64,000 bases of DNA, from the IMG/VR virus record IMGVR_UViG_3300028864_000016, positions 1-64,000 of that record; one strand, 5' to 3'. Every line of letters begins with the position of its first letter. The stretch's first letter is position 1. The translations under genes and the position numbers were made by a program. Positions 28,444 through 45,890 of this stretch are shown here, in pieces. Below the pieces are notes generated by a model. It was not told the DNA's origin. It ran no database searches and saw only the letters and a list, made by a program, of their open reading frames with translations.

Positions 28444-28552
28444 TATTTATTAGAATTTTTATAGTTTTATATAAAATTATTTGGATATTACAAGAATTTA
28501 TATGATTAATATATAGTTATTGTATAATTTATGTGATAATTATTTGAATAAT

Positions 28553-28745
28553 TAAATTAAACTAAACTAAAATTACCAATATATTAAATTAAACTAAATT
28601 AAATATTTAATAGTTATAATGTAAATTAAACTAATACATCTAAACTTTTAAACTAATGTAATGTTATAATTTTACTAAATTAAAGTCAATTAATTTCTTT
28701 ACTTTAATTTAATTATATGTTATTTTTATATTAATTTAGTTTAAT
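28553..28745 (+). repeat. TAAATTAAACTAA repeats upstream of tubY
   Basis: Copies at 28553, 28585, 28622 plus partial inverted copy 28734-28745. Confidence 0.6.
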
Positions 28746-28760
28746 AGGGAGGTATTATTA

Positions 28761-29459
28761 ATGAATTTTGATGATGTTTCTTATGTAGGTGTGCCAGATG
28801 ATTCTGAATGTATAAAAAATGCCGTTCAAATAGGTAAAGAATTAGATATACCACCTCATGTAATACGTTCATGGGCTGATGAATTTGAAGAGTTTTTATA
28901 TGTAAAGAAGATAAATGGTAGACTAACGTATACTCAAAAATCAGTAGATCAGTTTGAATGGATAAAAGCTATGCGTGATAAGGGATATGGTATAAAACAT
29001 ATTAGAGAACAATTAAAAGTAAAAGGTTTTACTGATAATAATGATTTAGGCTTAATAAATACCAATGATATTAGTTTAATGGAGTCAATACGAACAGATG
29101 TGGGAATCGAAGTTAAAAATCAATTGAAAGATTTTTTAATGGAATTTAAAAATTTACAAGAACAAATTGAATTGCAAAAAGAAGAAAGTAGAAAAATAGA
29201 ATTAGAATTGGTAATTGATGAGCATAATCAAATGTCTGAAGAAAATATGAAAAAACACATTGATGAAAAGATACTAAATCAAAGTAGCTTAATAAAAAAT
29301 GAGTTTGAAAAAATCAAAGAAAGAGATGTAACCTTAGTTGAAAACTTAAGAGAAACACTTAAAGATGAGAAGATTAAAGCTTTGGAATTTGAAATAGAAC
29401 AATTAAAAAATCAGCAACCAAAATCTTTTATATACAGAATATTCCATCTGAAGAAGTAA
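28761..29459 (+). CDS. tubY: MerR-like HTH/coiled-coil protein, TubY-like
   Basis: IGKELDIPPHVIRSWADEF HTH, coiled coil, C-terminal amphipathic KSFIYRIF; divergent from tubRZ. Confidence 0.7.
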   Translation: MNFDDVSYVGVPDDSECIKNAVQIGKELDIPPHVIRSWADEFEEFLYVKKINGRLTYTQKSVDQFEWIKAMRDKGYGIKHIREQLKVKGFTDNNDLGLINTNDISLMESIRTDVGIEVKNQLKDFLMEFKNLQEQIELQKEESRKIELELVIDEHNQMSEENMKKHIDEKILNQSSLIKNEFEKIKERDVTLVENLRETLKDEKIKALEFEIEQLKNQQPKSFIYRIFHLKK

Positions 29460-31379: not shown

Positions 31380-31543
31380 GTCGGTAATCAATCGGAATTT
31401 CATGTGTCGGTATTTAATCTAAGAAAAATATAAATAAAAGGACTAAATTTAATAGTCTTTTTATTTATAAAAAAAGAATTGATTTGAAATAAATTAAAGA
31501 AAATAATATTTGACATTTACATATAAAAGGAGTAATATATAAG

Positions 31544-31650
31544 TAAGGGATAGTTTAGACTGATCATCTAAATAAAAGACGTTTTAATCAACCTACGTTT
31601 TCCCTTATTCGTAAATAGGTTGATAATAAATTAAACAAGAAAGGTTGATT
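31544..31650 (+). promoter_or_regulatory. Three-way-junction leader with anti-RBS loop upstream of endonuclease gene
   Basis: Promoter TTGACA-17-TAATAT; stems P1-P3; loop AATCAACCT complementary to AGGTTGAT at 31617 and 31642 (RBS). Confidence 0.65.
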
Positions 31651-31655
31651 TAAAA

Positions 31656-33062
31656 ATGAAAGAAAAAACAGAAATAGTAAAAAAGGAATTATCATTAGAA
31701 TACCTACCACATAGAGGTAAGTTAATTAACTGGAAAGAATTAGTAGGTAAATTTGTACATTTTGTATATGGAGACATTGAGGGATTTATTGAGATTGTAG
31801 AATATTATATAGAAGAAAATAAAATTAAAACAAGATATAAAGACATAGAATATATAACAACAACTAGTAATTTTCAAAAAATAAAAATCTCGAATTGTTT
31901 AGGGATAAAAAGAAAAAACAGTAAAAAAGTAGGGTTTGAATATAATGTAGGGGATATTATAACCACCAATAATGGTAAAATTAAAATAATAAAACAAATT
32001 AGAGTTGGAGAAAAAAATATAAGAAGTTATGAGTATAAGTGCTTAATAGATGGAGATATAGATACCATAAGAGAATATGATTTAATTAAAGGTTGTGGTT
32101 GTAAAGTTTGTTCAAATCATAAAGTAGTGAAAGGTATAAATGACATTGCAACTACTCACCCATATTTAGTGAAGTATTTCAAAAACATAGAAGATACTTA
32201 TACTCATTCATACGGAAGTAAAGATAATTTTATATTCAAATGTCCAGACTGTGGTTGCGAAAAAGAAATGATAATAGTATTTTTTATTAAGCAAAATTAT
32301 TGTTGTCCTAAATGCAGTGATGGAATTTCTGTGGCACAAAAGATAATGTTTAATATTTTTGAACAGTTAAACGTAGATTTTATAACTGAATATAATCCTG
32401 ATTGGATTAAACCTAGAAGGTATGATTTTTACTTTAAAATACAAGATAAAAAATACATACTTGAAACAGATGGTGGTTGGCATATAAAAGATAATAATAG
32501 AAGTGGACAAACCAAGGAAAAATCTAAGTCAATAGATGATTATAAGGATGAGCAAGCTGTTTTAAATGGTATTGAAAAACCAATTAGAATAGATTGTAAT
32601 TATGGAAGTAAGGATAGATTTGAATATATCAGACAAAATATATTAAATAGTAAAAAACTAAATAAATTATTTGATTTAAGTAAAATTGATTGGAATAAAT
32701 GTTTTGATTTTTCATTATCATCAAGAATAAAAGAAGCTTGTGAATATAAGAAAAATAATCCTAATATGGCTACTGGTGATATAAGTAAAATAATGAAATT
32801 ATCACAAAGTAGTATAACAAATTTTCTCAAAGTGGGAAATGAAATGGGTTTATGTTATTATGACACTAAAGAAGAAATTAAAAAAAGTGGAAAGATAAAT
32901 AGTAAAAAAGTTATTTGTTTAGATGATGGATTGATTTTTGATTCAGCTAGAGAAGCAGGACGATTTTATAAATGTCATGGAAACAAAGTTTCAGCAGTAT
33001 GTCGTGGAGAAAGACAGTCTACTGGAGAGCGACATTTTTCATATAATAACATAACCAAATAA
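31656..33062 (+). CDS. Free-standing putative homing endonuclease (zinc ribbons, DUF559/PD-(D/E)xK-like nuclease, NUMOD1-like tail)
   Basis: CKVC, CPDC, CPKC; RYDFYF...ILETDGGWH...DDYKD; FDSAREA...VCRG. Confidence 0.75.
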   Translation: MKEKTEIVKKELSLEYLPHRGKLINWKELVGKFVHFVYGDIEGFIEIVEYYIEENKIKTRYKDIEYITTTSNFQKIKISNCLGIKRKNSKKVGFEYNVGDIITTNNGKIKIIKQIRVGEKNIRSYEYKCLIDGDIDTIREYDLIKGCGCKVCSNHKVVKGINDIATTHPYLVKYFKNIEDTYTHSYGSKDNFIFKCPDCGCEKEMIIVFFIKQNYCCPKCSDGISVAQKIMFNIFEQLNVDFITEYNPDWIKPRRYDFYFKIQDKKYILETDGGWHIKDNNRSGQTKEKSKSIDDYKDEQAVLNGIEKPIRIDCNYGSKDRFEYIRQNILNSKKLNKLFDLSKIDWNKCFDFSLSSRIKEACEYKKNNPNMATGDISKIMKLSQSSITNFLKVGNEMGLCYYDTKEEIKKSGKINSKKVICLDDGLIFDSAREAGRFYKCHGNKVSAVCRGERQSTGERHFSYNNITK

Positions 33063-33369
33063 CACCTTATATCAGATTCATTTACTTAAACATCAAAATA
33101 ACCCTCAATTTCAAGACTTGTCCCATCAAAGGTATTAGTTGTTGTCTAAAAATAGAACGCCTTAGAGAGCCAAATGAATGCGTTTAATCCCTATATATAA
33201 ATATATGCGAGATGTAGTAGAAATATTACATCTTTTTTATGTTTTTAATTATCTTTTAATAAAAGTAGTTTTGTGTAAGAAAAATCATAGATTAATAAAT
33301 TAATAGAAATAAGTATTGAATTAATTATAATAATATGGTAGTATAGGAATTAGGAAAGGAGGGTAAATA

Positions 33370-34236
33370 ATGAGCGAAAAATTTATAATGATACCTAATG
33401 ACTTTATAAATGGAGATAAAAAATTAGAATCTAATAAGTTATTATTATTAACTATATTACTGCAAGGTAGAAGTGGAAGTGATACTTGTTTATTTAGTGT
33501 GAGATACCTATGCCAAAGATTAAATACAACTACTGGCAATACTAATAGAACCAAATATATTATAGATACTTTAAAGTATTTTCAGGACAATGAAATATTA
33601 TTCTTTAGTGATAACATAGAATGTGATAATGAAATAAATATAGAAGAAACAACTAAACAAAATAAAACAGATATATTCTTTGCTGAATTAATAAATGATA
33701 TGGAGAATAATTTTACCATACTATATTATAAAGAGTTGAAAGCAATATTGGATTATTGTAATGATCATAAAATTGACAGATATTTAATTACACATTTATA
33801 TCTATACATAATGAGATTAATAGAAAATAATGAACAATCAGAAATATATAAATTAGCATTTCCATCAATAGAAGGAATAGCCGTATTATTAGATATAAGC
33901 GAGAATACAGTATTAAAATACATAAAGGCTTTAAAAGATGGAATGGGATTATTATATTATGATAATATAGGCTATAAAATAGTTAATGGAAAATATAAAG
34001 CAACTAAAACATATTATTGCAGAATGGTAGATAAAGAATTATTAGACAATAGAATATTAATTGAAAATAAAGATAAGTCTGTAATACCATTGAATAAGCA
34101 AGAGAAAAGTAAAATAAATAATAAAAGATCATTAAAACAAAAGATTAATATTTTAAATAAAAAGGTAGATAAGACAGAAAATGAAATAGAAATATTAAAA
34201 TCACTAGAAGACCAATACAAAAAACTAATAAAATAA
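33370..34236 (+). CDS. Winged-helix protein, replication-initiator/organizer-like
   Basis: FIMIPN N-terminus; AFPSIEGIA.LL.ISENTV.KYI..L HTH. Confidence 0.6.
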   Translation: MSEKFIMIPNDFINGDKKLESNKLLLLTILLQGRSGSDTCLFSVRYLCQRLNTTTGNTNRTKYIIDTLKYFQDNEILFFSDNIECDNEINIEETTKQNKTDIFFAELINDMENNFTILYYKELKAILDYCNDHKIDRYLITHLYLYIMRLIENNEQSEIYKLAFPSIEGIAVLLDISENTVLKYIKALKDGMGLLYYDNIGYKIVNGKYKATKTYYCRMVDKELLDNRILIENKDKSVIPLNKQEKSKINNKRSLKQKINILNKKVDKTENEIEILKSLEDQYKKLIK

Positions 34237-34606
34237 AAGACACAAAAAGAAAAACTAATGCGTCAGCAAGAAAATCTTATTAGTAAATTTAGTTATATTA
34301 GTATTTAGTATTATTAGTTAACTTCATTCTGAATGGGTCTCAGACAAAACGACTCAAGTCGGAGTTTGCTGATAACAATAAGGTCTTATAAAATAGATAT
34401 AGTCCTTTATGCTCTCAGACTAAAATGACGTTATTTGACTTGATAGTGTTAGCTAAAAAAGTGCAAATCAACATTTAAACAAATTAAAAGAAATAAGCTT
34501 GACAAAGTTAAATAATAGTAGTAGAATAAAGATATGGAAAAGATAGTAATTAAATCACTAAACTTCCATAGTAATCAATAAACAAATTAATGCGAACAGA
34601 AAGAAG

Positions 34607-34822
34607 GTGAGGATTATGAGTAATGTAATTCAATTTGCATCATTTAAATCAAGAAAGGAGGAATTAGACTTATATGAAAGGAATCAAGCTAGATTTGATG
34701 AATTGAAACCAAGGAGTTTTAGTCAAACTTTGAATTCTGAAGAAGAAATTGAGTTTGATGAATTATATAACTGGTTACAAATACATAATACAGACAAAAA
34801 TACAACAAAAGTGGCTTACTAG
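34607..34822 (+). CDS. Hypothetical protein
   Basis: ORF after TTGACA-17-TAGAAT promoter. Confidence 0.6.
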   Translation: MRIMSNVIQFASFKSRKEELDLYERNQARFDELKPRSFSQTLNSEEEIEFDELYNWLQIHNTDKNTTKVAY

Positions 34823-34861
34823 AATAAAATAAATTAATAGTATTAAAAAGGAGTGAATTAA

Positions 34862-35479
34862 TTGGTTATTGTTATAGATTTAGATAGTACAACCATAGAT
34901 ACTTGTAAATCAATAATTAACTTACATAACAAACTAAATGATAAAAAGATATTATATCAAGATAATTACACATGGAACTTCTCACCGATGATAAAAAACA
35001 AGGAAGAATTAAGTGAATTGTTTAAATTATTTGACCATGAGGATTTCTATGGAGATACATTAGTTGTATTTAATAAAGCTATAGAAATAATAAAGGAGTT
35101 ATCTAATGACAACATTGTAAAAATAGCAACAAAACATGATATGTTAAGACGACCAATAACACAAAGATGGATAAAAGAAACTTTTCCAAATGTAGAATTA
35201 ATATTTTTAGACAGTTTTGATAAATCAAGCGTAGGTAAATGTGATATATTCATTGATGATAAAATAGAAGCAATTGAGAGCATGAATGGTTTAGCTGATT
35301 ATAGAGTAGTATTTGGAGTTTATGACTGGAATAAACAATACAATGGTTTAAGATCAAGTGATTGGAGTGAATTATATAAAATGATTAAAAATATTGAGAA
35401 TACAATAAAAAATAACAAATTAATAGAAATAAGTAATAATAAGAAAGAAAAGGATGGTATAGAAAGATGGGAATTTTAA
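34862..35479 (+). CDS. HAD-family 5'(3')-deoxyribonucleotidase (NT5C-like)
   Basis: IDLDSTTID motif I, FIDDK motif IV, YDWN. Confidence 0.8.
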   Translation: MVIVIDLDSTTIDTCKSIINLHNKLNDKKILYQDNYTWNFSPMIKNKEELSELFKLFDHEDFYGDTLVVFNKAIEIIKELSNDNIVKIATKHDMLRRPITQRWIKETFPNVELIFLDSFDKSSVGKCDIFIDDKIEAIESMNGLADYRVVFGVYDWNKQYNGLRSSDWSELYKMIKNIENTIKNNKLIEISNNKKEKDGIERWEF

Positions 35480-35685
35480 AAGTAACAGAACAAAGGAAAA
35501 ATTTTAATAGAGAATGGAATCAATATTTAGGAGGGTTTTACGATGATTACAGTTATTTAGATGAATATAGTACGGGGAGTAAGTGTGATTGGATGACGGA
35601 GGCATATCTACTGGGTATAGATGTAACAGGGAAATTAAAACCATCAGACATACATAAAGTTAAGAGATATAATAAAGATAAGTAA
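35467..35685 (+). CDS. Hypothetical protein
   Basis: 72 aa ORF overlapping upstream stop. Confidence 0.6.
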   Translation: MGILKVTEQRKNFNREWNQYLGGFYDDYSYLDEYSTGSKCDWMTEAYLLGIDVTGKLKPSDIHKVKRYNKDK

Positions 35686-35724
35686 TACATATTAATAAAT
35701 TAATAGAAATAAGGAGGAAATATA

Positions 35725-36198
35725 ATGTTAAAGTATCGTAATACATATAGGGTGGTAGTTGAGTTCGATAGAAATACATTACAGCCAGCAAATAAAGAAG
35801 ACTTATACATATATTGTAGTAATAAAGGACAAGTTTATCGTTATAATGAGAATACGTTGGTATATTATAGGGATGGTGTTCTATCGAATAAACTAATAGA
35901 GAAACTAGATAGTTTAAAAATTAATTATAAAAATATGACTCAATCAGAAGTATTAATACATTTTGATGAAAAAGATTTAGATAAGTTAGTAGATGTATTT
36001 AATATAAGAACTAGTGGAGCAGGAATAAGTCCATTTAGTCAAAAGAATTTAAAGTTATTTAAATGGTTTAGAAATAATGAAGATACATATAGAAAAGCTG
36101 GATTGCTAAATGAAAATAAAAGAGAGTTGTCTGATGAAGAAAGAGAAGTATTAAGACAACGTATGATATTAGCTAGAGAGAAACGTAATAGGTGTTAA
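35725..36198 (+). CDS. Hypothetical phage protein
   Basis: AGGAGG RBS; C-terminal RELSDEEREVLRQRM. Confidence 0.7.
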   Translation: MLKYRNTYRVVVEFDRNTLQPANKEDLYIYCSNKGQVYRYNENTLVYYRDGVLSNKLIEKLDSLKINYKNMTQSEVLIHFDEKDLDKLVDVFNIRTSGAGISPFSQKNLKLFKWFRNNEDTYRKAGLLNENKRELSDEEREVLRQRMILAREKRNRC

Positions 36199-36559
36199 AA
36201 AGTATTTACTCAGATTAAAACATTTAGTCTATTTCAGGTTCTAGCATACGTAGTCGAATAAGTTGTTAAGTCAATATTTTTATATTAAATTCAGATAAAG
36301 TTTTGATTTAATTATATATGTTATTAAATTAAAAATATTTGGGTTTTAATTTTAAAAATTAGTTAGTAATATACTTTGTTGACTAAGTAATAAAAACGTC
36401 TTAGAATTAAAATCTTTTGGTTTCAGTAAATAAAAACTGATAAAGAATAGTGTATTGTATAATGATTAATAAATTAATATAAATAAAGTTTAAATCAAAT
36501 GCGTGTTTTTTTGGGAATTTAAAATAAATAAAGAATGAAAAATAAAGGAGAAATGTAAA

Positions 36560-37225
36560 ATGGAAATGAGTAGTAAAATAAAAGAAATATTATCATCAGT
36601 AGATAATTTGGTAAATGAAATTAAAAGAAACGGGTTTGATATACTAGATGAATATAAAGTATTAGATAATAAATTTGAAAATGGAATAATACAAGACATA
36701 TGCTTTGAATTGAAAGATAATCCATTAGATAGAGATTGGGATTACAACGGTTGTATAATTTTAATATTTGAGTATAAAGATGATAAAATTCAATGTCAAA
36801 TTCAATCAGAATCAGTAACAGATGATATAAATTATTCTAATTTTGCAAAATATAATAATTATTGTGATTCTGAAGAAGAATTGCCTGATTTCAAGAATGA
36901 AACTGATTTTGACAATAAATTTTATTGTAATTTTAATAACCATTATGATACAAAGTATTTTAAAACTATTAATATTTTTAAAAATATAACAAAATATGTA
37001 ATCAAAGCAGACTTAAATATTAAAGAATGTATTGAGACTCAAGAAAAAATTGATGAATTTGAATATAAATATTATGAAAAAATACTAGATTTAGATTCAG
37101 ATAATAAATATGGAAAAGCTTATGATGAATTGACAGAAGAAGAACAAGAAGAACTTGATGATGAAAGAGAGGGTATTGCAACTTATAACATGATGGTAAG
37201 AGAAGGTTGGATTGATGAAGATTAA
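36560..37225 (+). CDS. Acidic hypothetical protein
   Basis: AGGAG RBS, 221 aa. Confidence 0.7.
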   Translation: MEMSSKIKEILSSVDNLVNEIKRNGFDILDEYKVLDNKFENGIIQDICFELKDNPLDRDWDYNGCIILIFEYKDDKIQCQIQSESVTDDINYSNFAKYNNYCDSEEELPDFKNETDFDNKFYCNFNNHYDTKYFKTINIFKNITKYVIKADLNIKECIETQEKIDEFEYKYYEKILDLDSDNKYGKAYDELTEEEQEELDDEREGIATYNMMVREGWIDED

Positions 37226-37265
37226 TCATAAAAAAATTAATTTATAATAAAGGGAGAGTGACAGA

Positions 37266-40046
37266 ATGTCTAAGCAATTGTATAGTCAAAGATTTATATT
37301 AAAAATCCATTCATCAAGATTAAAGTTAAGCAAATGGAGCTTGGATATAAATTTAAAAGAAGCTAGAGACAATGAAGAATTAATATCATTAGGGGATGGT
37401 CAGTTATTAAGATTCATAAGAGAAATACGAAATATTAACAACACAGAAAAACAAATTAAAGAAATCAAAAAGGAAATTAAAGATGTAAAAAATGATAAGA
37501 ATAGTAAAAAAAATAAAGAAAAAATAATGGAATTATATAATGAATTGGATAAAATGTTATATATCAAAGATTATATAGCAATTGTATTTGATAAAAAATC
37601 AGATTTTGATAGAGCAACTGGAAAGAAAGGTGTATTTATAAATGGGAAGAGATATAAAAGATTAATTGGTACTACTGGAGGTGTAAAAGGAAATACAGTA
37701 ATGTTTTGTACTGAGGAAATACATAAAGAATTAAATGATAGATTAGAAAATGGAAGAAAAAAAGACGTTCCAATAATACCAGCAAAGTTTGAAGCTTATA
37801 AATCATTATCTGCAAGTGTATCTACTCCAGTAACTCAAACAGATAGAATATTAGTTATTAAAGATGGAACTACTCACATAAAAGATAAAGTTATTAGAGT
37901 GTATGATAATGATAAAGGTGGATTTAAAGTAGACCATAATGTTGAATATGAAGCTGACAAAGACTTTACAGATGGCGGAGGAATGGTAAGACCTTCAATT
38001 ATGGAACAATGGGCTATTGACTTGGGATTAACTAAAGGAGACGATAATGGGGATATAGTTGCTGATTATATCCCAAGTGGAGTAAACTCAAGATGGTCAT
38101 ATGAAAAAGGAATGCTAGTGACTTATGATTTTGAAATGTTTGCAAAAGAAATAGCTGGTACATATGAAGTTATAGATGCTTGGGGAAATAAACATGACAT
38201 TAGAAACATTGATATTATATTAACTACTAATATGCTAAAACTATGGAACGCTTATGATGATATAGACGATTACTTGAACAATTGTAAAAAGAATAATTTT
38301 TTACTAAGTGTTACAAAAGTTACTCCTAAAGAATTAGAAATAAAAAGAAATATGAATTATCAATACTTACAAAGTTATAACTTATCAGATGAAGATATTA
38401 CTGAATTAACATCCGAAACAGTAAATAATATAAAAGATGTTATAAGTGGTGATTATATAAAATCAATTCTATTTTCAAAAGGAATACATATAACAAAAGG
38501 CAATATTCTGAAATCAGATTATGATTATATAAGAGCTTTAACAATAGATAAAAGAGTGTTACAAGATTCATATGTTAAAAGTAAAATATATAAAATGATT
38601 GAAAAAACAATAAAGGAAGCTAAGAAAGGTGTAATTCAAACTAATGGTTCGTACTCAATAATTATAGGCGATATGTATGCACTCTGTCAGTCAATGTTTG
38701 GATTACCAATTACGGGTTTATTGAAAAAAGGAGAATTCTATAGTAGGACTTGGTCAGATAGGGGGAAAAAAGAAATAGTAGGATTCCGTTCACCTATGAC
38801 TTCTCACAATAATGTTAGAAAACATAAATTAGTTGATAATGAAGAATTAAGAAAATGGTTTAAATACATAAGAACTATGACAGTGTTTAATGCTTGGGAT
38901 ACTACAACAGATGCTATGAACGGGGCAGATTTTGATTCAGATGCAGAAATAGAAATAGATGATGATGTCATTACTAGAAATACTAGAAATGAATTAGCTA
39001 TTATTTGTGAACAAAAGTCAGCAAGTAAAGTAAAAGTTACTGAAAGCTTATTAAAAAAATCAAATAAAAATGGTTTTGGTGATGATATTGGAACTATTAC
39101 TAATAGAGTTACTGCAATGTTCGATGTATTAGCTTCATTAAAAGAAGGAACATTAGAATATAAAGAATTAATGGATAGAATAATATGTGGACAAGCATAT
39201 CAACAAGAAAGTATAGATAAAATAAAAGGAATTCAAGCTAAGCAAATGCCTAAACATTGGTATGATTATAAATGTAATAAGGTTAAACTTGAAGATAGTA
39301 AAGAAATAAGCGAAGAAAAAAATAAGAATATTAAATTAATGGTAAACAAAAAGCCTTATTTCTTTATTTATAACTATGACAATTTATTTAATAAATATAG
39401 AACATTTATTAAAAATGTTAAAAATAACTCATTAATTAAATTTGGATTGACTTTAGATGAATTAAAAAATAAGGAAAATAAAACTGAAGATGAGATAAAG
39501 TTTTTAAATTCAATACAATATAAAAGTCCAGTATTTTCAAATCCATGTACTATGAATAAAATATGTTGGAAAATTGAAGATGAATTCAAAGATATTAAAC
39601 TAAAAGTTAATAACTCTGATGGGTTTGACAAAGAGATATTAAAGACTAAGGTAAAATATGATAAAAATACATACTTAGAAATTGAAAATCTATATAGAGA
39701 ATATTTAAGACAACAAAAGCAATTTGGGCAAACTGCAAGATATAAATTAACAAAGGAAGAAAAAGATAGTCAAAGACAAATATTTGTTGAAAATTTTAAA
39801 ACTAAAGCCATTGAGATGTGCTCAAATAGTGAAATATTATGTAATATTGTCATTGATATAACTTATAAGGGCAAGAACCACAGGCAATTTGCATGGGATA
39901 TTTGTGGGGAACAAATCATTGAAAACTTATTAAATAAGAATGACAGGAAATATAAATATCCATTACAAGATAAAAACGGAGATATTGAATGGCAAGGGTT
40001 AAAATTTAAAGTAATAGAATTGGAGGACAAAGTATGCGAGGAGTAA
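37266..40046 (+). CDS. YonO-like single-subunit (RdRP-fold) DNA-dependent RNA polymerase
   Basis: FTDGGG, KGML, FRSP, catalytic-loop NGADFDSD, IGTITN, QESIDK.K; upstream of HU and head genes as in SPbeta. Confidence 0.85.
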   Translation: MSKQLYSQRFILKIHSSRLKLSKWSLDINLKEARDNEELISLGDGQLLRFIREIRNINNTEKQIKEIKKEIKDVKNDKNSKKNKEKIMELYNELDKMLYIKDYIAIVFDKKSDFDRATGKKGVFINGKRYKRLIGTTGGVKGNTVMFCTEEIHKELNDRLENGRKKDVPIIPAKFEAYKSLSASVSTPVTQTDRILVIKDGTTHIKDKVIRVYDNDKGGFKVDHNVEYEADKDFTDGGGMVRPSIMEQWAIDLGLTKGDDNGDIVADYIPSGVNSRWSYEKGMLVTYDFEMFAKEIAGTYEVIDAWGNKHDIRNIDIILTTNMLKLWNAYDDIDDYLNNCKKNNFLLSVTKVTPKELEIKRNMNYQYLQSYNLSDEDITELTSETVNNIKDVISGDYIKSILFSKGIHITKGNILKSDYDYIRALTIDKRVLQDSYVKSKIYKMIEKTIKEAKKGVIQTNGSYSIIIGDMYALCQSMFGLPITGLLKKGEFYSRTWSDRGKKEIVGFRSPMTSHNNVRKHKLVDNEELRKWFKYIRTMTVFNAWDTTTDAMNGADFDSDAEIEIDDDVITRNTRNELAIICEQKSASKVKVTESLLKKSNKNGFGDDIGTITNRVTAMFDVLASLKEGTLEYKELMDRIICGQAYQQESIDKIKGIQAKQMPKHWYDYKCNKVKLEDSKEISEEKNKNIKLMVNKKPYFFIYNYDNLFNKYRTFIKNVKNNSLIKFGLTLDELKNKENKTEDEIKFLNSIQYKSPVFSNPCTMNKICWKIEDEFKDIKLKVNNSDGFDKEILKTKVKYDKNTYLEIENLYREYLRQQKQFGQTARYKLTKEEKDSQRQIFVENFKTKAIEMCSNSEILCNIVIDITYKGKNHRQFAWDICGEQIIENLLNKNDRKYKYPLQDKNGDIEWQGLKFKVIELEDKVCEE

Positions 40047-40804
40047 TATTAAATGAATTGGAAATATATAATAAAGCTATTGATAAAAATGAGATATCAG
40101 ATAAACCATTAGAAACGCTAAGAATATTAACAAAGAATTATTTCAAGGATGGTATGGATAAAGAACAAATAGTTGAAACATTACATAGATTTATGGCTGG
40201 AAATTATATAGGTTATAAACAAACTAAGTGGCAACCTGTATTGGAACAAATGATAAAAAGCGTATCAAAATATGATTCTTATGAATTATTAAATATTAAA
40301 AGAATCTCAATAACTAAAGAAGAATGGAATAATATATTAACATTAAATAATGACATATTAGAAAGAATATCATTTATAATGTTAATATATCAAAAGATAA
40401 ATATTATAAAAAATCCAAAAAGCAATGGATGGATAAATAATTGTATCTCTGATATTTTTAGGGAAGCAAAAGTTGGATATACAGGAGACGAACAAAAGAA
40501 GTTTTTATACAACCTATATGAGAATGAATATATATTAATGAAAAATACATGTGATTCAAGTTCTCTAAAAATAAATTATATAAATGTAGAGAGTGAAGAA
40601 TTCATATATATTGATAACTTTGAAAATGTTATTAGCTACTATTATGAATATAAGAATAGTGAAGTTTGGAAAGAATGTGAATGTTGTAAGAAAAGATTTA
40701 AACTAAAGACTAAAAATAGTAATCAAAAATACTGTAATAAATGTGCAAAACAAATAAAAAACGAACAAAATAAAAAGTATTATTATAAAAATAATAAATT
40801 TTAG
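40034..40804 (+). CDS. Protein coupled to RNAP gene with C-terminal Zn finger
   Basis: CECC...YCNKC; overlaps RNAP stop. Confidence 0.7.
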   Translation: MRGVILNELEIYNKAIDKNEISDKPLETLRILTKNYFKDGMDKEQIVETLHRFMAGNYIGYKQTKWQPVLEQMIKSVSKYDSYELLNIKRISITKEEWNNILTLNNDILERISFIMLIYQKINIIKNPKSNGWINNCISDIFREAKVGYTGDEQKKFLYNLYENEYILMKNTCDSSSLKINYINVESEEFIYIDNFENVISYYYEYKNSEVWKECECCKKRFKLKTKNSNQKYCNKCAKQIKNEQNKKYYYKNNKF

Positions 40805-41200
40805 GAAAACGTAAAACTACAACAAACGTGATAACCATGCGTGTTTGAATGGTGTGAAAATCAAGAATTCCGATAATCTAATATGGTAGGTAATAGTATA
40901 ATTTTCTAAACCTACAAGTCACTATATGTAGTCATAAATGTGGCGATATACTTTTTAATTTTTTCATAACATTTCATTTTACCCCTTTATTTATTTAACT
41001 TTTCTCTCTCCTAAATGGACGTTCGGTTATATAACAGATAACTGGCGTTCATTAGAGAGAAAGAGTAAAAAATAAATGTGAACGAAATAAATTAATAGAA
41101 GAATAAAAACCAATAAACTTACAGTTTTAATGTCTAATTCAACTGAAAAGTTGTTTTAAAATATATAAGGGTAGTGACCAAGCACTAAAGGAGAATAGAT

Positions 41201-41668
41201 ATGAATAATAAGCAACAATTAGAACTAATTAAAATTAAAGAAGATGCTATTATGGATGAAATTGAAGAACTAAAAAGACTTTATGATTTAGATATTATAG
41301 AAGAGTATAGAAACTTTAATAATGTATTTATATCGTCTGTAAAAACACTATCACAAATAATGAGAAGTACAATAATATCTAGATATCACAGTAATGACAT
41401 CATATCTACTGGCAAGTTTTGTGTAAATGGAGAAGTTGTTGAAGAAGAAATGAAAAATACACTTACAAAAATAAATCCTATTATAGTTGATTTTATTAAT
41501 GATATGATTAATAAGTTTACAAATAAGTCAAAAAATTTATTGAAATTAAGACAGAATGCAACAAGTGAAGATTTTGATTTAGATGGTATTATGTATCCAA
41601 AGTATGCAAAAGGTTATAAATATACTCAACAAATAATAGATGATTATATGAGACTATTAATGGATTAG
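41201..41668 (+). CDS. Hypothetical protein
   Basis: AAGGAG RBS. Confidence 0.65.
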   Translation: MNNKQQLELIKIKEDAIMDEIEELKRLYDLDIIEEYRNFNNVFISSVKTLSQIMRSTIISRYHSNDIISTGKFCVNGEVVEEEMKNTLTKINPIIVDFINDMINKFTNKSKNLLKLRQNATSEDFDLDGIMYPKYAKGYKYTQQIIDDYMRLLMD

Positions 41669-41720
41669 TAATTAAAACAAATTAATGTTTTAAAATATAT
41701 TTAAAAAGAAGGAATGTTGT

Positions 41721-42275
41721 ATGTTAGATAATAAAGAACAAGAATACTTAAACAGATATGCTTATTTAGATTGTGGAGGTATTAAATTTTCTAAATTTGA
41801 TAAAGAAGAATTTAAAATCACTTGGCAGAATAAAGTTATGATTGATAAAAACTGGAATTCAACAATTATATTAGTCAAAACTGTTACTACAAATGATGAT
41901 TTAGAAAAAATAAATATTGGTGATATATTTGATTTAGAATTAAAATTTGCAATAAAAAATACAATTAATAATAAATTAGACATTAGATATAATAAGTATA
42001 AATTAATGTATTTTGTAAAAGAATTAAGAATACATACTGGTGATACTTTGATAGATACAGTAAGGATATTTACTGATAACAAAGACGATTTAGATGGTAT
42101 AGATTCAATTATTACAAGAGAAGAAAATCAACAATTAAGAAATACTATGTATAAATTAAGACCTAACAATGTTACATATAATGTAAATTGCGATTTTAAT
42201 GATTTAAATACTAATGCCGAAAAATTTATAGAAGAAATTAGTAAAATCACAGAGAGACAAATTAAATATAGATAA
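41721..42275 (+). CDS. Hypothetical protein
   Basis: AAGGA RBS. Confidence 0.65.
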   Translation: MLDNKEQEYLNRYAYLDCGGIKFSKFDKEEFKITWQNKVMIDKNWNSTIILVKTVTTNDDLEKINIGDIFDLELKFAIKNTINNKLDIRYNKYKLMYFVKELRIHTGDTLIDTVRIFTDNKDDLDGIDSIITREENQQLRNTMYKLRPNNVTYNVNCDFNDLNTNAEKFIEEISKITERQIKYR

Positions 42276-42378
42276 AATATAACTTTTAAGTTAATAAATT
42301 AATAGAACGATAATTAGTAAATATCCCTATCAAGGGTTATAAATAAAAAATTAGAGAGAAGAAAGAGGAGATTTTAAA

Positions 42379-42684
42379 ATGAACAAAGAAGGATTATTAG
42401 AATTAACAAAAAATGCATTAGGACTAGAAACAAAAAAAGAAGCTGAGGGTTTTCTAAAAGAAGTAGATGCTCTAATGGAAGCATTATCTAATGGATTAGA
42501 AGTAGGACAAAAAGTTAAGGCTGGTAAATACATAGAAGTAGAAAAGAAACATGTTGAAGCTAAACATTCGGATGCTAGAGTAGGAAGAAATCCTAGTACC
42601 GGAGAACCAATAAATATTGATGCTAAGGATTATCCAGCATATGATAAAGTTACAATTAAAGCAACTAAAGCTTTAAATAAGTAA
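42379..42684 (+). CDS. HU-family DNA-binding protein (YonN-like)
   Basis: MNK..L...; ARVGRNPSTGEPINI.A; K.LK. Confidence 0.88.
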   Translation: MNKEGLLELTKNALGLETKKEAEGFLKEVDALMEALSNGLEVGQKVKAGKYIEVEKKHVEAKHSDARVGRNPSTGEPINIDAKDYPAYDKVTIKATKALNK

Positions 42685-42830
42685 TAAGACATTTGAGAAG
42701 GATTAGATTAGAAATGATTTAGTTCTTCTTTTTTATTAAAACAAATTAATAAAATATTGATAACTATACTATTATATGTTATTATAGTTATATAAGTTCT
42801 AAGAGGTATCTTTAAAAGCCCCTTTCAAAT

Positions 42831-42942
42831 ATAGAGACACATTGAGGAGTCATGACCTTAATTAAATAGCTTATCTCAATCGGCTATGTCTCTATTTTTA
42901 TTAATGATTGAGAAATAAATTATAGAAAGAAGATTGAGAAAT
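42831..42942 (+). promoter_or_regulatory. Three-way-junction leader with loop complementary to the initiation region of the endonuclease gene
   Basis: P1 ATAGAGACA/TGTCTCTAT; loop TCTCAATC complementary to GATTGAGA at 42906 and 42932. Confidence 0.65.
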
Positions 42943-43947
42943 ATGAAAAAGACAATAGTAGATTATGATGAAACTTTATGGATGATACCATACTTTCAAG
43001 GTGGGTATGACGAAGCTAAAAAGTATACTCCACATACTTCAAAGAGAGTTAATTTTAAATGTCCTATTTGCGGAAGAGTAAAAGAGAAATCCACTACAAT
43101 AAATAGTTTATGTAATACTCATTCAATAGGCTGTATTTGTAATGATGGAATCCCATATACTGAAAAAGTAATATTTAACATTTTGGAGCAATTAAAAACT
43201 GATTTTATATATCAATTCAAAAAAATAAATGATTTATGGTGTGAAAACAAAATATATGATTTTTGTTTTGGACTAGATGGAGAAAGATATATTATAGAAA
43301 CTCATGGAATTCAACATTACGTACAAACTAATAGAAAAAATGCAAAAACATTAGAGGAAGAGCAAGAAAATGACATAATTAAAAAAGAACTTGCTCTAGC
43401 AAACGGAATTAAAAAAGAAAATTATATAGTAATTGATTGTAGATACTCAGATTTAGAGTTTATAAAACGCAATGTATTAGACAGTAATTTGGCTACTATT
43501 TTTGATTTAAGTAAGATTGATTGGAATAAAGTAGAAGAGTTTGCATTATCAAATCTAGTAAAAGAAATATGTGTTTATTGGAATGATAATGGTATTACAA
43601 TGAATGAAATTGCAGTAATGTTTAATTTATGTCCAACTACGGTGTCTAGATATATAAGTAAAGGAATAAAATTGAATTGGGTGAATAAAATAGAATTCAT
43701 AAATAATAAAGATTATTCAATGAAATTAGCACAGAAATATGCAAAACAATGTAATTCTAAGCAATTAAAAGTGTTCAAAGATGGAGTATATTTAGGTAAA
43801 TTTAACTCAACTAGGGAACTAGAAAGAATATCATTAGAAAAATTCGGTGTTAATTTTAATCATAGTGAAGTATCTAAAGTATGTAAAGGTAAATATAGAC
43901 AATATAAAGGCTATACATTTGAGTATGTAGAAAAAGAAGCATGTTAA
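42943..43947 (+). CDS. Free-standing putative homing endonuclease, paralog of 31656-33062
   Basis: CPICG, YDFCF...IIETHGIQHY...NDIIKK, IDCR, FDLSKIDWNK, NUMOD1-like tail; ATG 42943 preferred over TTG 42934. Confidence 0.75.
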   Translation: MKKTIVDYDETLWMIPYFQGGYDEAKKYTPHTSKRVNFKCPICGRVKEKSTTINSLCNTHSIGCICNDGIPYTEKVIFNILEQLKTDFIYQFKKINDLWCENKIYDFCFGLDGERYIIETHGIQHYVQTNRKNAKTLEEEQENDIIKKELALANGIKKENYIVIDCRYSDLEFIKRNVLDSNLATIFDLSKIDWNKVEEFALSNLVKEICVYWNDNGITMNEIAVMFNLCPTTVSRYISKGIKLNWVNKIEFINNKDYSMKLAQKYAKQCNSKQLKVFKDGVYLGKFNSTRELERISLEKFGVNFNHSEVSKVCKGKYRQYKGYTFEYVEKEAC

Positions 43948-44016: not shown

Positions 44017-45258
44017 ATGGAAAAGGTTAAATTTTATGATACAAATGAATTATTACATAGCATAGATGAAATAGAAGGAAAGATATTTTTAAGTTCAATA
44101 ACCCTTCAAGAATTAGAACATATTAAAACTTCAAAAAATAAAGATGAAGATGTTAGATTTGAAGCTAGAAAAGTAACTAGATTTTTAAGAGAAAATCAAG
44201 ATAGTTATGAATGTATAGTTGTTGAAAAGAAACATTATAAACTATTAGATAAAATGAATTTAGAACCTGATAATGATAATTTAATAATTGCTTGTGCTAA
44301 ATTATTAGAGAAATGTTATGATGTAGAATTTTTTACAGATGATATTTGTTGTTATAACATAGCTAAGAATATATTTGATTTAAAATGTAGTGGAATTAAA
44401 TCTAATACAAAAATCGAAACATATAAAGGTTATGTTGAAATCATTATGACAGATGAAGAATTAGCAAAATTTTATGAAAAAGAAAATAAAGAAAACATTT
44501 ATGGATTAGAAATAAATGAGTACTTAATTATAAAAGATACATTAAATCAACCAATTGATGCATGGAAATATATTGGTGATAGATTTGGATTTGTACAAGT
44601 GGACGTAAAGCCTATACAAAGTAAAATGTTAGGTAAGTTGAAAGCCAAAGACTTTTATCAACAATGTGTTCTAGATAGTTTTCAAAACAATACTATAACA
44701 GTAATTAAAGGTAAAGCAGGTAGTGGAAAATCTCATCTAGCTATGAATTTCTTATTTAGTCAAATGGATAAGGGTAAGATTGATAAGATTATAATGTTTG
44801 TTAATCCAGTTGCTACAAGGGGTGCTGTTAAACTAGGTTACTATAAAGGAACTAAAGACGAGAAGCTTTTAGATTCAACTATAGGTGCATTTTTACAAGG
44901 GAAATTGGCTGATAGTCTTAATGTCCAAACACTTATTGGAACAGGAAAGTTATTATTACTTCCTATGAGTGATGTTAGGGGATTTGATACAAGTGGTATG
45001 AATGCAGGTATCTATATTACTGAGGCACAAAATATGAGTATTGACTTAATGAAATTAGCGTTACAAAGAATAGGAGACGATTGTATTGCTATTATTGATG
45101 GTGATGTTGATACACAAGTAGATGATAAGCTATACGAAGGTTCAAATAATGGAATGAGAAGACTTTCAGAAGTGTTTAGAGGACAAGACTTATATGGTGA
45201 AGTTGAGTTAACTGAATGTTATAGAAGTAGAATTGCTAAAATAGCAGAAGAATTATAA
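44017..45258 (+). CDS. phoH: PIN-PhoH fusion protein (PhoH2-like)
   Basis: PIN YDTN..., QELE, DNLII, TDD; PhoH GKAGSGKS, LGYYKG...EK, RGFD, EAQN, DGD..Q.D. Confidence 0.88.
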   Translation: MEKVKFYDTNELLHSIDEIEGKIFLSSITLQELEHIKTSKNKDEDVRFEARKVTRFLRENQDSYECIVVEKKHYKLLDKMNLEPDNDNLIIACAKLLEKCYDVEFFTDDICCYNIAKNIFDLKCSGIKSNTKIETYKGYVEIIMTDEELAKFYEKENKENIYGLEINEYLIIKDTLNQPIDAWKYIGDRFGFVQVDVKPIQSKMLGKLKAKDFYQQCVLDSFQNNTITVIKGKAGSGKSHLAMNFLFSQMDKGKIDKIIMFVNPVATRGAVKLGYYKGTKDEKLLDSTIGAFLQGKLADSLNVQTLIGTGKLLLLPMSDVRGFDTSGMNAGIYITEAQNMSIDLMKLALQRIGDDCIAIIDGDVDTQVDDKLYEGSNNGMRRLSEVFRGQDLYGEVELTECYRSRIAKIAEEL

Positions 45259-45519: not shown

Positions 45520-45890
45520 ACATTGCAGACACTCATGTGAGGTTTGACAATTTATTAATTTTATAACGAATATTAAACGTGTAACGAGAATTGCATAGAA
45601 GTAGAAAATGGTTCTCTACAGACTCGAAAGAGTATCTCAGATGATGGATACACCGACCATCCTATGCAATTTAATAAAACAACTATTTTAGAAGGTATTT
45701 AAGTGAGGGCTAACACTCATTCCCCAGAGTAATTTTTATTTACTCGTCACTCCTTGAGGGGACGTTAAAATAATATTCAAGGCAAGGTTAGAATAGGGCG
45801 TGAAAACCTAACAAAGTGTTGAATTGAGTTATGATGACTTTAACAAAAAAGTAGGCGATTTGATAATGTGAAGTTATCCATCGCCTATAT
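45520..45890 (+). ncRNA. Cluster of stem-loops, putative ncRNA(s)
   Basis: AATTGCATAG/CTATGCAATT (45589-45671) enclosing three hairpins; further stems to 45888; ORF-free. Confidence 0.45.

Follow-up and report, generated by a model that had tools for sequence, protein, structure and literature searches.

Two paralogous endonuclease genes of a phage genome are each preceded by a leader in which one hairpin loop holds a palindrome and another is complementary to two downstream sites, the second of them at the translation start. This raises the question of whether these leaders belong to a wider RNA family and, if so, what they do to the genes behind them. We examined both leaders in a window of 64,000 nt (positions 1 to 64,000 of IMG/VR record IMGVR_UViG_3300028864_000016), in the remainder of the genome, and in related metagenomic and cultured phages. 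The two leaders are real members of a widespread phage RNA family that sits in front of selfish nuclease genes. The loop can base-pair with two copies of its own ribosome-binding region, most likely to keep these toxic genes nearly untranslated, although this function is inferred rather than shown.

Structure of the two leaders

The initial annotation had described, for each leader, helices P1 and P2, a 6-nt palindrome in the P2 loop as a possible kissing dimer, and a P3 loop able to pair with two targets. The observation is confirmed, as every coordinate and pairing that it listed is exact. In leader 1, P1 is formed by TAAGGGA and TCCCTTA, P2 reads TTTAGA / TGATCA / TCTAAA (31554-31572), and AGGTTGAT occurs at both 31617 and 31642. 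In leader 2, P1 was located at 42831-42839 with 42887-42895, P2 reads ATTGAGG / TCATGA / CCTTAAT, and GATTGAGA occurs at both 42906 and 42932. The features of both loci, with the junction helices as delimited in the fold, are collected in Table 1.

The minimum-free-energy fold of each core is the three-way junction (P1, P2, P3), with z = -2.3 and -3.3 against shuffles for leaders 1 and 2, respectively. A scan of the whole genome for a hairpin-loop 7-mer with two complementary copies downstream gave 14 hits against about 2.6 in shuffles, and four of these share one geometry in which the second copy abuts a start codon. Two more copies of the leader lie outside the window, at about 73.6 kb and 96.0 kb. 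The claim that the two leaders have no sequence identity was slightly overstated, because both share the AATAAATTA linker and leader 1 also carries the junction consensus of the family.

Table 1. Features of the two leader loci (all on the plus strand; positions are those of the window).
Feature	Position	Description	Support
Upstream terminator-like hairpin, locus 1	31429-31469	17-bp stem, then a T run; closes the upstream gene	Fold of 31425-31480, -15.9 kcal/mol
Promoter-like site, locus 1	31510-31538	Sigma-A/sigma-70 type, TTGACA-17-TAATAT; predicts a transcription start at about 31544, the first base of P1	Conserved position
Leader 1 three-way junction	31544-31607	P1 31544-31550 with 31601-31607; P2 31553-31573, palindrome TGATCA at 31561-31566 in its loop; P3 31577-31600, loop 31583-31594	Fold; covariance-model hits R1 27.2 bits, R2 44.1 bits
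Target 1 of leader 1	31617-31624	AGGTTGAT, complementary to the P3 loop	Duplex -11.6 kcal/mol
Promoter-like motif, locus 1	31625-31633	AATAAATTA, between the two targets	Copy of genome-wide motif
Target 2 of leader 1	31642-31650	AGGTTGATT, covers the Shine-Dalgarno and spacer region, 5 nt before the ATG at 31656	Duplex -11.4 kcal/mol
E1	31656-33062	468-aa homing-endonuclease-like protein: zinc finger, PD-(D/E)xK-like core, HTH and I-HmuI-like C-terminal DNA-binding module	
Upstream terminator-like hairpin, locus 2	42695-42730	Closes the upstream HU-like gene	Fold, -15.8 kcal/mol
Promoter-like site, locus 2	42757-42785	TTGATA-17-TATTAT with an upstream TG; about 40 nt before P1, with a weak extra 5' hairpin in between	
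Leader 2 three-way junction	42831-42895	P1 42831-42838 with 42888-42895; P2 42841-42862, palindrome TCATGA at 42850-42855 in its loop; P3 42866-42887, loop 42872-42881; TTTTT run at 42896-42900	Fold; covariance-model hits R1 21.1 bits, R2 45.5 bits
Target 1 of leader 2	42906-42913	GATTGAGA	Duplex -11.1 kcal/mol
Promoter-like motif, locus 2	42914-42922	AATAAATTA, between the two targets	Copy of genome-wide motif
Target 2 of leader 2	42932-42939	GATTGAGA, 3 nt before the ATG at 42943	Duplex -11.0 kcal/mol
E2	42943-43947	334-aa paralog of E1 that lacks its N-terminal extension	

A conserved RNA family

To determine whether the fold is conserved, we built a covariance model seeded only on five metagenomic leaders (termed class 2), unrelated to the window. 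Without using the targets, the model recovered the leaders of E1 and E2, the 96-kb copy, and new members. Together with a pattern scan it finds about 50 distinct instances, including in the cultured Bacillus phage KoopaTroopa and Sporosarcina phage Lietuvens. In an alignment of 18 sequences, 94.3% of cells pair against 69.7% in shuffles (0 of 500 reach the observed value), and 20 of 23 pairs show changes on both sides, while structures with the 3' partners slid by 1-3 columns pair at only 44-53%. Sequences in the family are related, so cell counts overstate independent events, and the alignment used for the pair counts was fitted to the model. G·U pairs and much lower minus-strand scores mark the element as an RNA of the gene's strand.

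The junction is conserved (AUA, a G·U pair, GAU, AAG/CUU), whereas the P3 loop is hypervariable and covaries with one or, usually, two downstream repeats, the second of which overlaps the Shine-Dalgarno sequence or start codon. Covariation of loop and targets among homologs had been put forward in the initial annotation as one test of its proposal, and the P3 loop covaries with both downstream copies across many sequence classes. In the first set, a second complementary site of at least 6 nt occurs in 20 of 23 own leaders against 8% of 352 cross-pairings, and at 7 nt or more in 13 of 23 against 0.6%. In a set found by a pattern that ignores P3 and the targets, the figures are 13 of 28 against 1.2%, and about half of these pattern-derived members have a second site of only 5 nt or none. 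The two duplexes have the same mean energy, -9.9 kcal/mol each. Repeat 1 lies 5-20 nt after P1, and target 2 ends between 6 nt inside and 11 nt before the start codon and is complementary to the P3 loop in 12 or more sequence classes. RNA pairing that covers the Shine-Dalgarno or start region of a homing-endonuclease gene is inferred from covariation, the pairing itself not having been probed.

The P2 loop holds a 6-nt palindrome in 22 of 24 instances, of seven different kinds (T....A), against 10-13% expected. This is the pattern of a dimerisation element of the kissing-loop type, in which an apical hexamer stays self-complementary while its sequence changes. Cofolding favours homodimers by 8-12 kcal/mol, although all-A/U palindromes (TAATTA, TTATAA) give almost no predicted duplex energy; formation of a physical dimer was not assayed.

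Directly after P1 lies a U-rich tract that the initial annotation had missed. Across 48 members, the T fraction is 0.81-0.48 at positions +1 to +8 after P1, against a background of 0.33, and in KoopaTroopa CCCTGCT is followed by TATTTTTT. The tract looks like an attenuator or terminator, but the data point both ways: a scan for simple terminator hairpins found none in either window leader, several members (E1, the 96-kb copy) have poor U tracts, and P1 closes a branched structure and is often only 5-8 bp, so that termination efficiency is not known. Also missed was the sigma-A-type promoter-like site that would place the transcription start at P1. Its placement recurs in many family members, including KoopaTroopa; matches of this kind occur at chance frequency in AT-rich DNA, and the evidence is therefore the conserved position.

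No Rfam 15 family describes this RNA. At gathering thresholds the window gave only skipping-rope at 45591, and E-value scans of both leaders, of the sequence L001 and of 12 related loci returned nothing relevant, with no match to C4 (RF01695), HEARO, hammerhead, twister-sister, pistol, hatchet or riboswitch families. Literature searches likewise found no description. A riboswitch would have a conserved ligand pocket and an expression platform; the junction nucleotides are conserved, yet the loops are hypervariable, no known class matches and no ligand could be inferred, which leaves this assignment undecided.

Downstream genes

E1 and E2 are paralogs (33% identity, E = 3e-39) and there are six paralogs in the genome. 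They match PHROG 9084 and 7140 ('homing / intron-encoded endonuclease') and carry an I-HmuI-like C-terminal module, in agreement with free-standing homing endonucleases. The catalytic fold is only weakly matched to PD-(D/E)xK nucleases (AF1548, RecU, I-Bth0305I, with E above 0.01), no Pfam domain was detected, and activity was not tested.

Across the family, the downstream genes encode homing endonucleases of at least four catalytic families (PD-(D/E)xK-like, GIY-YIG, HNH and T5orf172), DUF4379/NUMOD nucleases, DUF1376 proteins and replication-type proteins. The leader is therefore not specific to the E1/E2 paralog family, a point absent from the initial annotation. In one case the same leader and the same AGGTTGA repeats precede E1 and an unrelated GIY-YIG enzyme, and in another phage contig identical leaders precede two different paralogs.

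The motif AATAAATTA between the repeats had also gone unremarked. It occurs in 182 copies in the genome, 65% of them in the 20% that is non-coding, typically 15-30 nt before start codons, and the phage encodes a YonO-like RNA polymerase. That AATAAATTA is a promoter is inference, as the YonO promoter is not defined in the literature consulted.

A model for leader function

We favour, with moderate confidence, an attenuator-like 5' leader of about 60-70 nt, attached to free-standing homing-endonuclease genes and some replication-type genes of phages that infect Bacillota. In this model, host RNA polymerase starts at the sigma-A-type promoter so that the RNA begins at P1 and folds into the three-way junction, and many transcripts probably end at the U-rich tract as a short RNA. 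Read-through transcripts would carry both repeats, and pairing of a P3 loop with the second would block ribosome binding and keep the nuclease scarce. The palindromic P2 loop would let two leader RNAs dock, as kissing loops or an extended duplex, whereby a short RNA or a second mRNA brings a second P3 loop. One loop would then hold repeat 1 and the other repeat 2, forming a two-site clamp whose strength rises with RNA concentration. In this phage, AATAAATTA may in addition give late transcripts that lack the leader, as at T4 homing-endonuclease genes.

Our analysis demonstrates the structure and its strand, the covariation of the stems and of the loop with both repeats, the palindromes, the U tract and the gene association; termination, dimerisation, translational repression and the role of repeat 1 are inferred. 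No transcript data exist, and the only RNA runs examined held almost nothing of this region; release from the leader of a stable small RNA that acts on targets in the same transcript was not tested. The interpretation offered in the initial annotation, an undescribed pseudoknot switch limiting toxic nuclease expression or an RNA cofactor of the nuclease, is partly supported: a role in restraining toxic nuclease genes fits the gene association, the cofactor reading is not supported, and whether the first copy acts as a decoy in a cis switch was not tested.

A further step, possible but unlikely on present evidence, is a self-dimerising antisense device. Short leader RNAs released at the P1/U-tract attenuator would dock on the mRNA leader through P2, and the pair of identical P3 loops would clamp two identical sites, so that translation is shut off in proportion to the square of leader RNA concentration. 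This would be an RNA-only dosage sensor carried as a portable module with its promoter and swapped among unrelated homing-endonuclease families.

Alternative explanations

A purely cis bistable switch, as the initial annotation proposed, is the strongest alternative, though we consider it unlikely. One P3 loop would toggle between repeat 1 (decoy, translation on) and repeat 2 (ribosome-binding site, translation off), tipped by a protein or small ligand bound at the junction, with the palindrome serving something else. The equal duplex energies, the conserved junction with freely varying loops, and the position of repeat 1 within reach for a pseudoknot agree with this idea. However, it gives no reason for the covarying palindrome or the U tract, one loop facing two equal sites would mask the ribosome-binding site only part of the time, and no candidate ligand or protein is known. 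Less likely still is a temporal bypass alone, in which the leader silences translation of early, host-polymerase transcripts and the nuclease is made solely from late transcripts starting at AATAAATTA between the repeats, repeat 1 and the palindrome being accessory. The genome-wide motif at the usual distance before start codons, the YonO-like polymerase and the T4 precedent support it, but many family members have only 26-45 nt between P1 and the start codon (30 nt in KoopaTroopa) and no such motif, so that this can be only a local addition and not the mechanism of the family. For the window leaders themselves, AATAAATTA lies between the two targets, but in the absence of transcription-start data it is not settled whether it is a phage-specific promoter whose transcripts lack the inhibitory strand.

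The remaining readings appear very unlikely. A 5' stabiliser or exonuclease-resistant fold, protecting the mRNA from 5'-end-dependent decay (RNase J1), would suit a structure at the very 5' end of the predicted transcript, and the topology resembles flaviviral xrRNAs, which combine a junction with a loop-to-downstream pseudoknot; this resemblance was not tested. It does not explain why the loop also matches the initiation region, nor the palindrome, and toxic selfish nucleases are expected to be repressed rather than stabilised. DNA-level operators, with the three copies of the motif (one inverted, two direct) bound by the nuclease's own DNA-binding domain, would recall I-TevI, which represses its own promoter through a site like its homing site, and the motif does differ between paralogs. 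Yet the inverted copy always sits in the loop of a covarying hairpin, the G·U pairs and strand asymmetry point to RNA, and shared leaders precede unrelated or different proteins. An RNA cofactor or guide analogous to the omega-RNAs of IscB and TnpB, the least likely reading, could be suggested by the position upstream of a nuclease gene and the variable loop. It is disfavoured because the downstream proteins belong to unrelated folds, each with its own DNA-binding modules, the putative guide is 6-10 nt long and matches the gene's own initiation region, and no Rfam HEARO match was found in the window, the leaders or the related loci sampled; no protein-RNA complex was modelled.

Comparison with known systems

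The closest precedent is found in the hairpins that sequester the ribosome-binding site, with late-promoter bypass, at T4-type homing-endonuclease genes (I-TevI, I-TevII, I-TevIII, segB, Aeh1 mobE; PMC2988022). Gene class and inferred purpose are the same, masking the Shine-Dalgarno region on transcripts from upstream promoters, and in the window a promoter-like motif lies just upstream of the masked site. The T4 elements are simple local hairpins with no conserved fold in phages of Proteobacteria, whereas here, in phages of Bacillota, a conserved three-way junction would mask the site at a distance through a loop, with a second repeat, a palindromic loop and a U tract. The c4 antisense RNA of phages P1 and P7 is a small structured RNA made from the leader of the very transcript it controls, its loops pairing with two sets of targets, one covering a ribosome-binding site, and loop and target sequence setting the specificity. 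It uses two loops (a', b'), is released by processing, has no palindromic loop and controls an antirepressor operon, and no homology to it was detected in the window, the leaders or the related loci sampled.

In the par (Fst/RNA II) type I toxin-antitoxin of pAD1, a toxic gene is kept untranslated by an RNA that pairs at two direct repeats flanking the initiation region after a first loop-loop contact. RNA II is transcribed convergently and carries both complementary repeats itself, while here a single loop faces two repeats and the RNA is co-directional and upstream. The P2 loop resembles the HIV-1 dimerisation initiation site (DIS), with a 6-nt palindrome flanked by purines (for example AG-TCATGA, AG-TAATTA-A) that varies while staying self-complementary, although the context is a phage mRNA leader and not a viral genome, and several of the palindromes are all A/U. 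As in intrinsic terminators and attenuators, a closing helix (P1; in class 2 also P3) is followed directly by a U-rich tract, though a poor one in several members, but the helix closes a branched structure and no alternative antiterminator fold was identified.

Homing endonucleases are among the commonest selfish genes of phages, and how phages of Gram-positive bacteria keep them from killing the phage or its host is largely unknown. The leaders described here provide a defined and widespread RNA module with strong covariation, a programmable loop-target pair, a likely dimerisation loop, and members in cultured phages with tractable hosts, making its control directly testable. The module also offers a compact, orthogonal translational repressor for Bacillota, and it would add a new RNA family to phage genome annotation, where these intergenic regions are now blank.

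Leader Architecture within the Phage Genome

The initial annotation had described two leaders without sequence identity in front of two paralogous endonuclease genes, each with a palindromic loop and a second loop complementary to two downstream sites. This observation held, as every sequence element it named was recovered at the position assigned to it. Folded alone, each core gave the same three-way junction, with P1 closing the structure, a P2 hairpin, and a P3 hairpin with a 10–12-nt loop (z-scores of -2.3 and -3.3). Each P3 loop is complementary to two direct repeats, the second of which ends 3–6 nt before the ATG. A scan of the 218-kb genome for a hairpin-loop 7-mer with two complementary copies downstream returned 14 hits against about 2.6 in shuffles, and four of them share one geometry, with the second copy abutting a start codon. 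In contrast, a looser 6-mer loop-target scan was at chance, and a structure-only descriptor search for three-way junctions in the genome was no better than shuffles (221 hits against about 167), so it was replaced by a covariance model.

The two downstream proteins, E1 and E2, are paralogs (33% identity, E = 3e-39) and match PHROG families annotated as homing or intron-encoded endonucleases. Their C-terminus resembles the DNA-binding end of I-HmuI, while the catalytic core has no Pfam domain, and an AlphaFold model (pLDDT 72.8) gave only weak matches to PD-(D/E)xK nucleases. A PIN-PhoH fusion protein and an HU-like DNA-binding protein flank E2, and a skipping-rope RNA (Rfam RF02924; 61.6 bits against a gathering score of 36.7) lies just downstream of the PIN-PhoH gene. 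A near-identity search of the 13-kb region in cultured phages returned no match.

The window is the first 64 kb of a single 218,173-bp peat-metagenome phage contig with 25.8% G+C, which holds six paralogs of the nuclease. A third paralog carries the same architecture with entirely different letters; P1 is AGGAAC/GTTCCT, P2 is elongated with TTGCAA in its loop, and the P3 loop TTACTAACC faces GGTTAGTAA and GGTTAGT. The leader of this paralog (E3) is missed by the covariance model because its P2 is 14 bp long, and it was accepted by eye and by folding. The other three paralogs abut upstream ORFs and have no leader; two nuclease paralogs lacking a leader lie in tandem on the minus strand in locus L003 of this genome, each abutting the upstream ORF, and one of them is 646 aa long. 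A fourth leader (loop TTCCTAC, targets GTAGGAA twice) precedes a 555-aa protein that is not a nuclease. This protein has no Pfam hit, and its language-model neighbours are replication, primase, and DnaD-type proteins.

Coordinates of the leaders, their targets, and associated features (window positions unless stated otherwise)
Feature	Position	Strand	Remarks
TAAATTA repeats	about 28490-28700		At least five copies upstream of ORF 28761-29459
Leader 1 segment in a peat DNA run	31505-31605		Contig junctions at 31538 and at 31575 (to 32659)
Leader 1, target 1	31617		AGGTTGAT
Leader 1, target 2	31642		AGGTTGAT
E1	31656-33062		Nuclease paralog
AATAAATTA motif, examples	34828, 35694, 45261, 60403, 60901, 62026		Candidate promoter
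YonO-like RNA polymerase	37266-40046	+	926-aa ORF
PIN-PhoH fusion protein and HU-like DNA-binding protein	44017-45258 and 42379-42684		Flank E2
Extra segment between predicted start and P1 of leader 2	42786-42830		About 40 nt
Leader 2, target 1	42906		GATTGAGA
Leader 2, target 2	42932		GATTGAGA
E2	42943-43947		Nuclease paralog
Skipping-rope RNA	45591-45669	+	RF02924
E3 leader	genome 73561-73639		
Third paralog	genome, starting at 73682		
Fourth leader	genome 96025-96086		Precedes the 555-aa protein
Tandem nuclease paralogs (L003)	genome 188.4-191.9 kb	-	No leader
Locus L170	L170 8677-8740	-	Target 1 carries an ATG
Locus L180	L180 3460-3523	+	Target 1 carries an ATG

A Covariance Model of the Leader Family

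Loci around homologous nucleases in IMG/VR and JGI metagenomes contained further examples of the leader. Because a MAFFT alignment of all 16 leaders mis-aligned the 3' halves, we seeded a covariance model (R1) on five co-linear "class 2" leaders only and realigned with Infernal. R1 recovered both window leaders, the 96-kb copy, and four new members without any use of the targets. On the 18-sequence model alignment, 94.3% of cells pair against 69.7% in column shuffles (0 of 500 reach it), 20 of 23 pairs change on both sides, and structures with the 3' partners slid by 1–3 columns pair at only 44–53%. The alignment is model-fitted and the sequences are related, so these figures overstate independence, but the signal is large. 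G·U pairs, including a conserved G·U at the base of P2, and minus-strand scores of 22 bits against 74–96 bits on the plus strand mark an RNA of the gene's strand.

The rebuilt model (R2) separates members (33.7 bits or more) from noise (21.8 bits or less) over about 120 loci. The consensus order is P1, AUA, P2 (starting with G and ending with U), GAU/GAA/GAC, P3 (AAG...CUU), and then the 3' strand of P1 with no junction bases. The leader is absent from Clostridium phage c-st, C. perfringens phage BG3P, and 10 bacterial-genome loci that hold homologous nucleases. Leader 2 and its relative in locus L025 have about 40 extra nucleotides between the predicted start and P1, which hold a small hairpin (AAGGGA/TCCCTT in L025) that other members lack.

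Complementarity of the P3 Loop and Its Targets

Absence of loop-target complementarity in homologs had been set out in advance as a result that would refute the initial inference. We compared each loop with its own leader and with unrelated ones. In the first set, the second-best complementary site is at least 6 nt in 20 of 23 leaders against 8% of 352 cross-pairings of unrelated loops and leaders; at 7 nt or more, it is 13 of 23 against 0.6%. We then scanned IMG/VR with a pattern that fixes only the junction and a TCATGA loop, which hit more than 112 stretches; R2 confirmed 81 of these, 28 of them distinct. In this target-blind set, two sites of 6 nt or more occur in 13 of 28 against 1.2%, and of 5 nt or more in 23 of 28 against 16%, so two sites are usual but not universal. 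These counts come from related sequences.

More than a dozen unrelated loop-target sequences occur, for example, GAAAGGA, TCGGAA, CTAGGA, GTGAGG, TGTTCG, CGTTTGGCA, TAATGGAACA, and GAGTTGG. The two duplexes have the same mean predicted energy, -9.9 kcal/mol each, and target 2 covers the Shine-Dalgarno sequence, the spacer, or the start codon itself. A leader peptide after target 1 was considered, as short ORFs exist in a few members, but there is no consistent start codon or spacing. In locus L170, the ATG-bearing target 1 is an in-frame duplicate of the first seven codons of the ORF (MEHQFNY-MEHQFNV), while in L180, L092, and the 73.6-kb leader, target 1 opens a 4–17-codon ORF.

Palindromic P2 Loop, U Tract, and Probable Promoter

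The P2 loop holds a perfect 6-nt palindrome in 22 of 24 leaders where it was not imposed, against 10–13% expected. The seven palindromes are TCATGA, TAATTA, TGATCA, TTGCAA, TAGCTA, TCGCGA, and TTATAA, usually preceded by two purines. A palindrome in a loop cannot pair within that loop, and its maintenance through sequence change therefore argues for pairing between two molecules. Cofold energies favour homodimers by 8–12 kcal/mol, although all-A/U palindromes are weak.

Directly after P1, the T fraction is 0.81, 0.67, 0.54, 0.48, 0.62, 0.67, 0.54, and 0.48 at +1 to +8 against a background of 0.33, and it falls to about 0.2–0.3 from +11. A sigma-A-type promoter ends 2–5 nt before the model start in many members. 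The clearest case is Bacillus phage KoopaTroopa, with TTGACA-17-TATAAT, then P1 AGCAGGG/CCCTGCT followed by TATTTTTT, then GAGTTGG twice, and then the ATG.

Genes Downstream of the Leader

Genes downstream of the leader include nucleases of the E1/E2 type (DUF4379 zinc finger plus NUMOD1 or I-HmuI-like modules), HNH with NUMOD4, GIY-YIG with or without NUMOD3 or AP2, T5orf172/MUG113, and DUF1376 and other replication-like proteins. The host range (Bacillus, Sporosarcina, and Clostridia-like phages) is known only from a few named records. In KoopaTroopa, the leader and its GIY-YIG gene sit just after a DNA-binding protein and a PhoH2-like gene, recalling the neighbors of E2.

One phage contig uses an E1-type leader, with the same AGGTTGA repeats and a compensated P2 stem, in front of a GIY-YIG enzyme, and another uses one identical leader for two different paralogs. 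The leader with its promoter is therefore a portable module, not a partner of one protein. In a peat DNA run, the leader 1 segment had about four times the contig depth of its flanks, one contig joined a different promoter within it, and another joined the leader to a position inside E1; the leader seems to be shared with other genomes in the sample. This fits a portable module but is weak evidence. Of the 22 sequencing runs that hold the phage, nearly all are peat DNA, and the three RNA runs gave no coverage of the leader.

A Promoter-like Motif between the Targets

The 9-mer AATAAATTA follows target 1 in leaders 1 to 3, while the 96-kb copy has AATAAATCA instead. It occurs 182 times in the genome against about 56 expected, with 65% of copies in the 20% that is non-coding, and it typically sits 15–30 nt before start codons, on both strands. 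The cluster of TAAATTA repeats in the window could be an array of the same promoter-like motif or an iteron-like region. The window also encodes a YonO-like single-subunit RNA polymerase, which is 50% identical to the split YonO homologs CST179/CST177 of Clostridium phage c-st and also matches proteins of Enterocloster and Bacillus phages. YonO transcribes the late genes of SPbeta, but its promoter is undefined (PMC5467207). We infer that AATAAATTA is a phage promoter, a candidate for the phage's own polymerase, whose transcripts would lack the junction and target 1. That is the logic known for T4, in which an RBS-masking structure on early transcripts has a late promoter inside it (PMC2988022).

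Proposed Mechanism and Alternatives

What the sequences themselves establish is a conserved strand-specific fold at the predicted 5' end, a loop that covaries with two sites, one of which is the initiation region, a self-complementary loop, a U tract, and linkage to toxic selfish genes. The steps that follow are inferred, in the absence of transcript, probing, or expression data. Loop pairing with target 2 likely blocks 30S binding. That P1 with the U tract terminates a share of transcripts and yields a short RNA is about as likely as not, and the same holds for dimerisation of the P2 loops. More doubtful, though possible, is that dimerisation brings a second loop so that both targets are held at once, which would explain together why there are two identical, equally strong sites and a palindrome.

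The alternatives are a cis-only bistable switch set by a factor bound at the conserved junction, a purely temporal bypass, a 5' stabiliser, DNA operators, and an RNA cofactor of the nuclease. A temporal bypass through AATAAATTA cannot be the core mechanism of the family, because many members have no room for such a promoter. DNA operators and an RNA cofactor are disfavoured by the strand-specific pairing and by the unrelated downstream proteins; no structural model of protein with RNA was obtained, which bears on neither side. The initial annotation had offered a pseudoknot switch limiting expression of a toxic nuclease or an RNA cofactor of that nuclease, and this interpretation was only partly supported. 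A hammerhead ribozyme was also considered because CUGAUAAG resembles CUGAUGAG, but it was rejected, as there is an A at the G8 position, no GAA after the second hairpin, and no Rfam hit.

Relation to Known Leader RNAs

No Rfam 15 family matches the window, the leaders, or a sample of relatives, and full-text literature searches found no description of the element. It would work like the T4 RBS-masking leaders and also recalls P1 c4 RNA and the par RNA II/Fst system, but it is not a member of any of these by sequence or fold. Translational masking of homing-endonuclease genes by leader RNA is already known, and what sets this family apart is a portable conserved junction, a programmable loop with paired targets, and a DIS-like loop.
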